Both the position numbers and the translations under genes were made by a program. From NCBI GenBank assembly GCA_039096225.1, contig JBBPEB010000019.1, forward strand, positions 186,001 through 250,000: DNA of 64,000 bases, in the 5' to 3' direction. This DNA is from Blastocystis sp. Blastoise (taxonomy: Eukaryota > Protista > Bigyra: Opalinata). This document shows positions 41,977 through 45,154 of the stretch, piece after piece. How positions within the stretch are numbered: the first letter of the stretch is position 1; each line of letters starts with the position of its first letter. A model generated the notes under the pieces. It was not told the DNA's origin. It was given only the letters and a program-made list of their open reading frames with translations, and made no database searches.

Positions 41977-42212
41977 AAATTATAAATGATATATATATTT
42001 TTTAAATATTTAACAATGTTATTTCTTTTAGATTAGTATATTTAAATTATATTACTTTCTTTAATATAGTTTTGACAAAAAGTATCCTGTTTTGTCTCTT
42101 AAAGTATGAGTATTCAAATTGTGTTTTGTTGAATTTTACATAAAAACAATTGGAAAATATCATACTATTATATTCCTTTCTAGAAAAAACGAAATTTTTG
42201 TAAAATAAAAAA

Positions 42213-42285
42213 TTCCCATGCCGGGACTCGAACCCGGGTCGGCGAGGTGAAAACCCGCTATCCTAACCGGCTAGACTACATGGGA
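42213..42285 (-). tRNA. tRNA-Glu (anticodon TTC)
   Basis: TCCCATGTAGTCTAGCCGGTTAGGATAGCGGGTTTTCACCTCGCCGACCCGGGTTCGAGTCCCGGCATGGGAA folds as a cloverleaf, has a GTTCGA T-loop and is followed by an oligo-T terminator. Confidence 0.96.
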
Positions 42286-42373: not shown

Positions 42374-43003
42374 ATGCGTTACCATCAACTATTATCTGAA
42401 GCTAGATTTACTTTAAGTTCTCCACAACTGAGACAAACGAATGCAAAATATTTCTGTATGTTTCTATTGTGTTTTGTTGTATATGTATAGTAATTTACTT
42501 CCTTCTTGTGATACTTTGCCATTTGATTTCAATTTGTAATAATGTGTGGAAGTTCGGTATATAAAAAATTAATATAAAACTATTTTATTTTAGATTTTTC
42601 AATCAATTATCAAATAAAAGGGTTTAATATAATTTCTGCTTATTATTTACTGCTTTATTTTCTTGGTTTCTTTGGAATTATGCTTGAAAGACAACAATTT
42701 CTAAAATATTTCTCTGTATTTCTTGAATTCATTTCATTATCTATTTTCATTTAGACAACTCAAACGTGGATGTCTAAGCGGTGCAGACCTTTTATTATCA
42801 CGTATAAAATTGTTGGCTTTTATATATGATTCTATTGTATAGAAAGACTATGTTTCTCTTAATGATATCTTTATTTGTTGTCAATATATATTGTTGTTCT
42901 TCTTTATATACATTCTTAAAAGATATTGACAAACCTATTCTCGGGAAAATCAAGAAATTCACGGGAATCTGGCTCAATTATTTATGGGCATTTTCTGTAA
43001 ATG

Positions 43004-43072
<69 letters not shown>

Positions 43073-43125
43073 GGTATTATTTTGTACTCGAAACACTATT
43101 TGGCAGCATATATTACATCTCAATC

Positions 43126-43161
<36 letters not shown>

Positions 43162-43232
43162 ATATATATATATATATATAGTTAAACTCACTCATTTTTC
43201 ACCGTTTTATTGGAACTACCACTTATATAGTA

Positions 43233-43270
<38 letters not shown>

Positions 43271-44428
43271 GATTATTCATTTTGGTTCAATTTATCTCAA
43301 ATGGTTTAATGAGGATAGACTCGATAAATTATTCCATAAATTTGTAAATATATATAGTGTCATTATTATATATATATTATATATATAGAATAAATGGAAT
43401 GGATTATCGTGGGAAACTTCAACTCAATTATGGATATATATTTCTCCCGCGGTTATTTTTCTTTTAATCACAAGTCTCTATAAAATCCGACGATACTCAT
43501 GGGAATTTTTTTATATTGTAAGTATTATATATATATTATATATTATATATTATATATATAGCCACATGGATTAATAAATATTATTATGGTGAGTTTATCA
43601 CGTATATATATATTATATATATGTATATATATTATATATATGTATATATATTATATATATTTATAACTCTATAGTAATTCATTCACGAAACAGTGTTTTT
43701 TTCCTATTACCTGCTCTTTGTTTATATATATATGATAAGATACAACGACAAATTGATATATATATACATAAATATAGTATAGTTGATGCACTAGTTGATC
43801 ACGGTATATATATATATATATATTTATATATGTATATTTATATATGTATTCTAGCTCTACTCTATTTATGTATATAGGAATTATTCGATTAGACCTTATT
43901 CCCCGTGGGAATTCAAGGGTGACATTACCTTTACCTGGTCAATATATATTCATTAATATTCATATCCTTATATATATAGTGTTATTAGTTTAGTATACTA
44001 ATATATATATTATATATTATGAATAATAGAAGATATATATACTTAACTGTATACCTTTAGTATCTAAATATGAATATCATCCGTTTACTGTCGCTGAAGT
44101 GACGCAGAACCGTGTCATTCTGCATATTAAAGTATATTATTTTTCTATAATATTATTATACATATATGTTTGTATTCATTATTTCTTATAATATATATAT
44201 ATATAGCCATGTGATAGACACTCGTGGACTCAGAAATTGTATACTTATATTAATACAAATAAAATTCATACAAATACAAATATATATATTGAAGGACCTT
44301 ATGTATGTATATATATATAACTATATATATATAGGGAGAGATGGTAAATGTGAATCAGGAACGAGATATTATATATATAGGAGCAGGAGTGGGATTTGCG
44401 GGAATCAGCTATTCTATTCTTGTATATA

Positions 44429-44463
<35 letters not shown>

Positions 44464-45154
44464 ATATATAGAATACAATAGATCGTTATGATCGTGGTGA
44501 ATTGCCGAATTTGAAGAATATCGATATATATCTTACACTTATAAGTGATGGTATATATATATAGCTAAATATAGCTATATATATTTATATATATAGAGCA
44601 CTTATATTGGTATAGTCAACAACTTATGAAAATTAAAGTATATAATGATAATAAACATATAATAATAAACATATAGTAATAATAATAACTATAATAATAA
44701 ACATATAATGATATAAACATATAATAATAAACATATAATGATAATAAACATATAATAATAAACATATAATGATAATAAACATATAATAATAAACATATAA
44801 TAATAAACATATAATAATAATAATAACTATAATAATAATAATATTCAATAGAAATGTTCGATTGTTCATTTACATATATATATAACATTCTCAAAGTCTC
44901 CTGAGCGACGAATTACTACATTTAAAAACAAATCAAAAGGAAAATTCATTTTTTATCCTACCGTTGAATCTCCGACAGTTTTAGAGTTTTCTATTGGTCG
45001 AATGGACACGTGCTCTTTATTAGCGAAATACTCACCGGATATTCGTCACATGTTTTATATTTGTGCTCCTCCATCTCTATACTCATTGGTATGTGATCAC
45101 GTGTATACAAATCTAACTAAAAGCGTTGTTTATTCAGATCCCTTTGAAATGTAA
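42374..45154 (+). CDS. Ferric reductase / NADPH oxidase-family flavocytochrome, multi-exon, containing one U12 AT-AC intron
   Basis: TRNTIW, HRFIG...IIH and FFYIPH...LIH (four heme His), [22 protein letters not shown] (FAD), [15 protein letters not shown] (NADPH), GRMD, FYICAP, DPFEM*. Confidence 0.88.
43962..44054 (+). other. U12-type (minor spliceosome) AT-AC intron
   Basis: 5' site ATATCCTT, branch TACTTAAC ending 7 nt before the 3' end, terminal AC. Removal restores the conserved [21 protein letters not shown], while retention hits a TAG. Confidence 0.85.
44640..44845. repeat. Intronic minisatellite (AATAATAAACATAT-type units)
   Basis: Tandem 14-17 bp units visible in the sequence. Confidence 0.7.

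Follow-up and report, generated by a model that had tools for sequence, protein, structure and literature searches.

AT-AC introns of the U12 type, together with the whole minor splicing machinery, have been published for Blastocystis ST1 and ST7 (PMC5608401, PMC10639083). For ST1, Gentekaki et al. 2017 (PMC5608401) described 346 U12-type introns, the complete set of four snRNAs and each of the seven specific proteins, and a later survey of this subtype counted 253 minor introns, 77% of which were AT-AC (Larue and Roy 2023, PMC10639083). Tortoise isolates of Blastocystis have genomes of 26-33.3 Mb with 21-23% GC, and the paper that presents these genomes makes no mention of U12 introns (PMC12129017). 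The DNA analyzed here, referred to as the window, is a whole stretch of 64,000 nucleotides (G000:C1:186001-250000) from the 33.3-Mb genome of the tortoise-gut isolate Blastocystis sp. Blastoise, which consists of 34 contigs and has about 23% G+C.

Positions 43962-44054 of the window most probably form a U12-type AT-AC intron of phase 1 within the FAD-binding domain of a NOX/ferric-reductase-family gene, and we estimate the probability of this reading at about 0.88. The proposal was first made by a sequence-only reading, and it is upheld here because of the splice signals, the reading frame, the spacing in homologous proteins (human NOX2 and the metagenome sequence L014), the conservation in a paralogue, and the snRNA candidates found in the genome. 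The predicted intron is similar to the ST1 and ST7 introns in that it comes from the same genus, has AT-AC termini and a ATATCCTT-type donor, and is accompanied by minor snRNAs in the genome, which are candidates in Blastoise. At 93 nt and with (TA)n runs inside, it is longer than the ST1 introns, which average about 42 nt; this length fits the longer introns of the tortoise isolates (PMC12129017). It also differs from the ST1 and ST7 introns in its phase, which is 1, and in being unannotated in the deposited genome.

The canonical U12 AT-AC consensus of metazoans and plants reads /ATATCCTT ... TCCTTAAC, 10-15 nt, AC/. The Blastoise intron agrees with it at 8/8 positions of the donor and 7/8 positions of the branch box, the box lies near the 3′ end without a polypyrimidine tract, and the Blastoise candidates for U11 and U12 retain their recognition sequences. 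The system differs from the canonical one in the short distance of 8 nt between the branch A and the intron end, and in the U6atac candidate, which has GCCGAG in place of AAGGAG.

The predicted intron and its host gene

The coordinates of the intron, its host gene and the related features are collected in Table 1. The sequence was re-read at this position, and the length, the ATATCCTT start, the TACTTAAC box, the AC end and the flanking exons were all found as originally described. The donor, which follows the pattern RTATCCTT, sits directly at the exon end. The branch box ends 7 nt ahead of the terminal AC and is followed only by TGTATAC; the likely branch A is nucleotide 44046. Upstream of the intron, the coding sequence runs up to ...ATT AAT ATT C; downstream, exon 9 opens with CT TTA GTA TCT AAA TAT GAA TAT CAT CCG TTT ACT, and the codon split as C/CT encodes Pro, the residue at the junction that follows ...GQYIFINI. 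The interior of the intron contains (TA)n runs as do the neighboring introns, the major introns of the host gene being of the type GTATAT...(TA)n...TATAG, and the filler is thus common to both classes, as had been noticed earlier. Retention of the intron would introduce three in-frame stops on straight translation.

Table 1. Positions of the predicted intron, the host gene, the paralogous introns and the snRNA candidates. Plain numbers are positions in the window; other positions carry the name of their contig or locus.
Feature	Position	Strand	Remarks
Flavocytochrome gene (NCBI WA158_000060)	about 42770..45154	+	~14 short exons; stop TAA 45152-45154
Exon 8	43878..43961	+	last base is the C of the split Pro codon; 68% protein identity to paralogue exon
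U12-type AT-AC intron (predicted)	43962..44054	+	93 nt, phase 1; paralogue intron at same codon
5′ splice site ATATCCTT	43962..43969	+	8/8 to U12 consensus; same letters in paralogue
First in-frame stop TAG on retention	43991..43993	+	first of three
Branch-site box TACTTAAC	44040..44047	+	7/8 to TCCTTAAC
3′ terminal AC	44053..44054	+	sole acceptor restoring family spacing
Exon 9	44055..44131	+	starts CT (rest of Pro codon); carries HPFT FAD motif
GT-AG intron of NCBI model, rejected	43938..44060	+	GTCAAT...CTTTAG, 123 nt
Paralogue AT-AC intron	L007:3124-3219 (G000:C34:697623-697718)		96 nt; codon position as in 43962-44054 intron
GT-AG intron of NCBI paralogue model	L007:3100-3225		GTCAAT...CTAAAG
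U11 candidate	C4:1684165-1684293		62.9 bits, over cut-off 39
U6atac candidate	C21:544821-544937 (L002:1501-1617)	-	63.8 bits, over cut-off 33
U12 candidate	C24:844725-844868		46.8 bits, under cut-off 53
U4atac candidate	C8:151033-151167		29.7 bits, under cut-off 53; relaxed threshold only

In the proposed mechanism, U11 would pair with ATATCCTT and U12 with TACTTAAC, leaving the branch A bulged 8 nt from the intron end. The RNA would then be cut at C/ATATCC...TATAC/CT, and the segment encoding ...GQYIFINI would be joined to the downstream exon. We infer that the 43961^44055 junction is in actual use and that the cutting is done by the minor spliceosome. The U12 reading is weakened by the one mismatch in the branch box; by the 8 nt that separate the branch A from the intron end, near the lower limit of what is usual in human; by the chance-level frequency of the motif in the window and the lack of genome-wide enrichment of the strict composite pattern; by the below-cut-off scores of the U12 and U4atac candidates and the missing AAGGAG box of the U6atac candidate; and by the deposited annotation, which uses a GT-AG junction here and comes from a pipeline said to favor introns with RNA-seq support.

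Judging from its Pfam domains and from profile matches to NOX2 and NOX5, the host gene is a NOX/ferric-reductase-family flavocytochrome, as the sequence-only reading had also concluded. The deposited model of the gene (P0001, WA158_000060, 408 aa) matches FAD_binding_8 with 31.9 bits and NAD_binding_6 with 25.2 bits, both over the cut-offs, and the model of its paralogue (P0002, WA158_008477, 567 aa) matches FAD_binding_8, NAD_binding_6 and Ferric_reduct with 28.9, 32.3 and 38.5 bits, respectively. A two-sequence profile matched human NOX2 structures with an E value of 5.5e-10 (~40 bits), and NOX5 was matched as well. When the reading with the AT-AC intron was searched exon by exon against Pfam and PDB, the matches were all weak. 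Exon 9 alone matched profile positions 43-69 of FAD_binding_8 with an E value of 0.024, and its best matches in PDB were of NOX5 type and not significant (E about 0.84 to 1.6). Ferric_reduct was matched in the host gene at the exon level only (E 0.14); part of this domain is missing from the deposited model of the gene. The sole matches for exon 8, to designed beta-trefoils, were discarded as spurious.

All 14 exons of the host gene are open and the family motifs are kept. The histidine pairs FHRF...TIIH and PHG...IHS can be read from exons 3, 4, 6 and 7. In terms of likeness to NOX2 (PDB 8gz3, 8kei, 7u8g) and NOX5 (5o0x, 8u7y), the Blastocystis pair shares the HPFT, GQYIF and GPYG motifs, and both the host gene and the paralogue share the Ferric_reduct, FAD_binding_8 and NAD_binding_6 architecture and the H-x13-H pairs in the membrane domain. 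Unlike NOX2 and NOX5, the Blastocystis protein is very divergent, without EF-hands, and short (~480 aa by the exon model). The organism is an anaerobe, and O2 or Fe(III) is a candidate substrate of the flavocytochrome. The intron lies within the FAD_binding_8 domain, but the earlier description of it as splitting the FAD-binding motif has to be narrowed, as HPFT is intact and the intron lies 8 codons upstream of it.

Several minor observations were made around the gene. A tRNA-Glu(UUC) gene is located on the minus strand at 42213-42285, ~0.5 kb upstream of the first annotated flavocytochrome exon (ARAGORN; Rfam 61.6 bits). Further upstream, the spacer contains two copies of TGTGTTTTGTTG, at 42120-42131 and 42468-42479, a sequence similar to the TGTTGTT 'downstream gene element' that has been described at the ends of Blastocystis transcripts (PMC12129017). 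The last intron (44638-44851, 214 nt) contains an imperfect tandem repeat with a AATAAACATATAATGAT-like unit, while the other introns are filled with (TA)n.

Splice junctions, family spacing and the paralogue

To establish which junctions are available, all in-frame, stop-free solutions with GT-AG, GC-AG, AT-AC and related termini were enumerated by script. Thirteen GT-AG solutions were obtained, and each removes or adds residues within the conserved segment, either by a deletion (43938-44060) or by an insertion of 12-17 TA-coded residues (for example 43979-44029). The earlier statement that there is no GT-AG solution therefore holds for restoration of the family motif, which none of the thirteen achieves, but not for frame and stops alone. 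Among all the enumerated in-frame solutions, only 43962-44054 yields the spacing G-x7-P-x7-H.

This junction is supported because human NOX2 and an intronless homologue show the same spacing. The NOX2 segment GQYIFVKCPkVSKLEWHPFT has a length equal to that of the AT-AC product and the same G-x7-P-x7-H spacing, and 14/20 residues are identical. The intronless homologue (L014:1964-3250), which was one match from a metagenome scan and served purely as a spacing reference, reads GAVIHLTVPSISIVQSHPLS and again has this spacing. It is a distant NOX/FRE homologue on contig JABLTK010121660.1, with a 429-codon open frame and 40% GC; the frame has no introns across the FAD and NAD domains, and it has HPLS where the others have HPFT.

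A search within the genome using the C-terminal exon found one paralogue, located on contig C34 (L007), with ~50% protein identity. All exons align between the two copies, and the clear matches have 39-69% protein identity per exon. The paralogue has its own AT-AC intron at the same codon position (Table 1), with the junction ...AAT ATT C / ATATCCTT ... TTCTTAAT ATGTATAC / CT AAA GTA TCT and the product NIPKVSFNEFHPFT, in which PKVS matches NOX2 exactly. Between the two copies, the 5′ splice site is identical in 8/8 positions, TTCTTAAT stands at the place of TACTTAAC, and the segments from the branch site to the intron end are alike. The identity of the intron interiors was 0.71 compared to 0.63 +/- 0.04 for shuffled sequences with a permissive aligner, which is near background. 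The shared codon position, the kept signals and the drifted interior argue that the AT-AC intron is older than the duplication that gave the C34 copy, and that its signals have been under constraint. The paralogue intron has no in-frame stop and its retention would add 32 residues, in contrast to the three stops in the window copy. Because the retained paralogue intron would leave an open frame, the conservation of its splice signals is not simply explained by the need to remove stops.

Orthologues were also sought outside the genome. A phmmer search of exon 14 against 1.84 billion representatives returned only the gene itself, the paralogue, and P0003, which was rejected as an orthologue since it is an unrelated MFS protein. 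A word search with P0002 matched only the two Blastoise proteins, and a search for contigs encoding P0001 gave no match.

The enumeration leaves room for a short internal GT-AG intron, such as 43979-44029 (51 nt), that would leave an insertion of 12-17 residues, or for an unspliced, decaying pseudogene. Several such internal solutions are open and in frame. Their donors, GTGTTA and GTTTAG, misfit the strict GTA consensus, and the insertion would be a translation of the TA repeat that neither NOX2 nor L014 nor the paralogue has; in the paralogue the intron interior differs in both sequence and length, and no insertion is conserved. A pseudogene is at odds with 14/14 open exons and the kept family motifs, and we regard explanations of this kind as extremely improbable.

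A U12-type intron that uses the ATATCCTT donor and an AG six bases further downstream (43962-44060, AT-AG, 99 nt) was also considered. In human U12 introns, a branch A placed 14 nt before the intron end is more typical than one at 8 nt. The AT-AG junction is in frame, and its AG is 14 nt from the branch A and so nearer to the typical human distance. With this junction, however, the conserved Pro and Val would be missing, and the P-x7-H spacing found in NOX2 and L014 would no longer hold. The sequence CCT-xxA-GTA (Pro-x-Val) after the AC is kept in both paralogues, with PKVS in the paralogue as in NOX2, and the other intron-like ATATCCTT...CTTAAC matches in the genome end in an AC 5-8 nt past the box. 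The AT-AG junction is thus highly unlikely to be the one used.

Motif statistics were rejected as the sole proof of the AT-AC intron, as the bare pattern is at chance level. For RTATCCTT, 11.5 sites are expected in the window and 12 are present; at the 11 sites besides the donor, no branch box was in place. The composite of ATATCCTT, a branch box with at most one mismatch and AC has an expectation of 0.27 per 64 kb, and 21% of the simulated windows contained at least one. Genome-wide, the strict composite pattern had 39 matches compared to 92 in the reversed control and is not enriched; roughly 1/3 of the 39 resemble short TA-rich introns. What gives the motif its weight is the precise place and the reading frame in which it stands.

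The deposited annotation of the two genes

The two genes are deposited as 'hypothetical protein WA158_000060' and 'WA158_008477 [Blastocystis sp. Blastoise]'. In both models a GT-AG intron with a GTCAAT donor deletes ten residues including GQYIF, and the paralogue model reads ...LPLPVSFNEFHPFT across the junction. If these models are right, then the major spliceosome removes 43938-44060 and the protein is truly short of ten residues. This intron is in frame and stop-free, and the GTCAAT junction is used in the models of both paralogues. The annotation was made with a pipeline (BRAKER3, StringTie, Mikado) said to favor introns supported by RNA-seq (PMC12129017), and the junction may have such support.

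Several observations stand against the deposited junction. In the two models, which together have 28 introns, the GTC donor and, in the paralogue, the AAAG acceptor stand alone; in the remaining introns, 26/26 donors are GTA and 26/26 acceptors are TAG. Both the GT and the AG are by-products of coding sequence: the GT belongs to the Gly codon GGT, and the AG arises where an A-ending codon meets the Val codon GTA. With the deposited junction, the last 24 nt of exon 8 would be intronic. These 24 nt are 92% identical between the copies, compared to 59% for the undisputed rest of the exon, and in both copies they encode GQYIF(I/L)NI in frame and with the exact NOX2 spacing. In addition, FAD_binding_8 aligns to both deposited models only from profile position 40-41. 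Overall, we consider it very unlikely that 43938-44060 is the intron that is removed.

The model WA158_000060 also skips other conserved exons, which suggests that it originated from an ab initio prediction limited to GT-AG introns. It lacks the exon at ~43269-43349 (TIIHFGSIY...), which carries the second haem histidine, the partner of FHRF. Exons 6-7 are placed in another frame with loss of the PHG...IHS pair (region 43233-43808), and P0002 retains both features.

The sequence-only reading had warned that an annotation allowing only GT-AG would mis-model the gene, and the deposited models directly confirm this, as both are without the GQYIF strand. Because a conserved strand of the FAD domain is lost where the AT-AC intron was not used, the deposited models would mislead any functional or comparative reading of the two proteins. 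Other minor-intron genes of the Blastoise genome are probably affected in the same way. The known picture of minor splicing is unchanged, U12 introns having already been published for Blastocystis. What is new here is very probably an AT-AC intron that is shared by a gene pair and absent from the deposited annotation, and its main value is practical, for the annotation of two NOX/ferric-reductase paralogues. It would also add one minor intron predating a gene duplication to a lineage with reported rapid minor-intron turnover (PMC10639083). In terms of regulation, it is conceivable but rather doubtful that the intron, which both paralogues have kept at one codon position, acts as a retention switch on the flavocytochrome. 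The idea that slow U12 splicing limits this enzyme was put forward with the sequence-only reading and is pure speculation.

Candidate components of the minor spliceosome

Whole-genome Rfam searches were performed for the minor snRNAs with the cut-offs listed in Table 1. The U11 and U6atac candidates score over these cut-offs, but those for U12 and U4atac score below. Together with what has been published for the genus (PMC5608401, PMC10639083), the presence of candidates for U11, U12, U4atac and U6atac favors the view that this protist keeps a minor spliceosome, which had been proposed from the intron alone.

The AAAGGG of the U11 candidate can pair with the ATATCCTT donor. The first 27 nt of the U12 candidate fit the consensus, including the recognition sequence GAGUAAGGAAA. 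The pairing of the 5′ 22 nt of the U4atac candidate with U6atac has an energy of -28.9 kcal/mol compared to -13.4 +/- 2.6 for shuffles (0/500 reach it), and stem I of the two candidates is complementary apart from a single G.U wobble. Because of this wobble (UGCUGAC in the candidate), searches for U4atac with two complementarity patterns gave no match. Among the proteins, a C-terminal fragment of PDCD7/59K was found with 25.3 bits, under the cut-off of 27, and zf-U11-48K domains with at best 40.5 bits, a domain that is not exclusive to the 48K protein.

The U6atac candidate, which is the sole one in the genome, has GAGCCGAGAGAAGG in place of the conserved Rfam consensus GAAAGGAGAGAAGG, with GCCGAG where the AAGGAG box is expected. 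In human, the AAGGAG box of U6atac pairs with the 5′ splice site. In the Blastoise candidate this box is absent, although the introns retain ATATCCTT, and the only pairing with the 5′ splice site given by duplexfold was CCUU:AAGG at nt 20-23. It is conceivable, but on these sequences rather doubtful, that Blastoise splices its ATATCCTT introns using a U6atac without the AAGGAG box. If true, 5′ splice site recognition after U11 release would work differently in this tortoise Blastocystis.

A U6-type catalytic box, AGAGAAGATTAGCA, is located on the minus strand at C21:551558-551571, 6.6 kb from the U6atac candidate, and a U6 gene may thus adjoin the U6atac gene.
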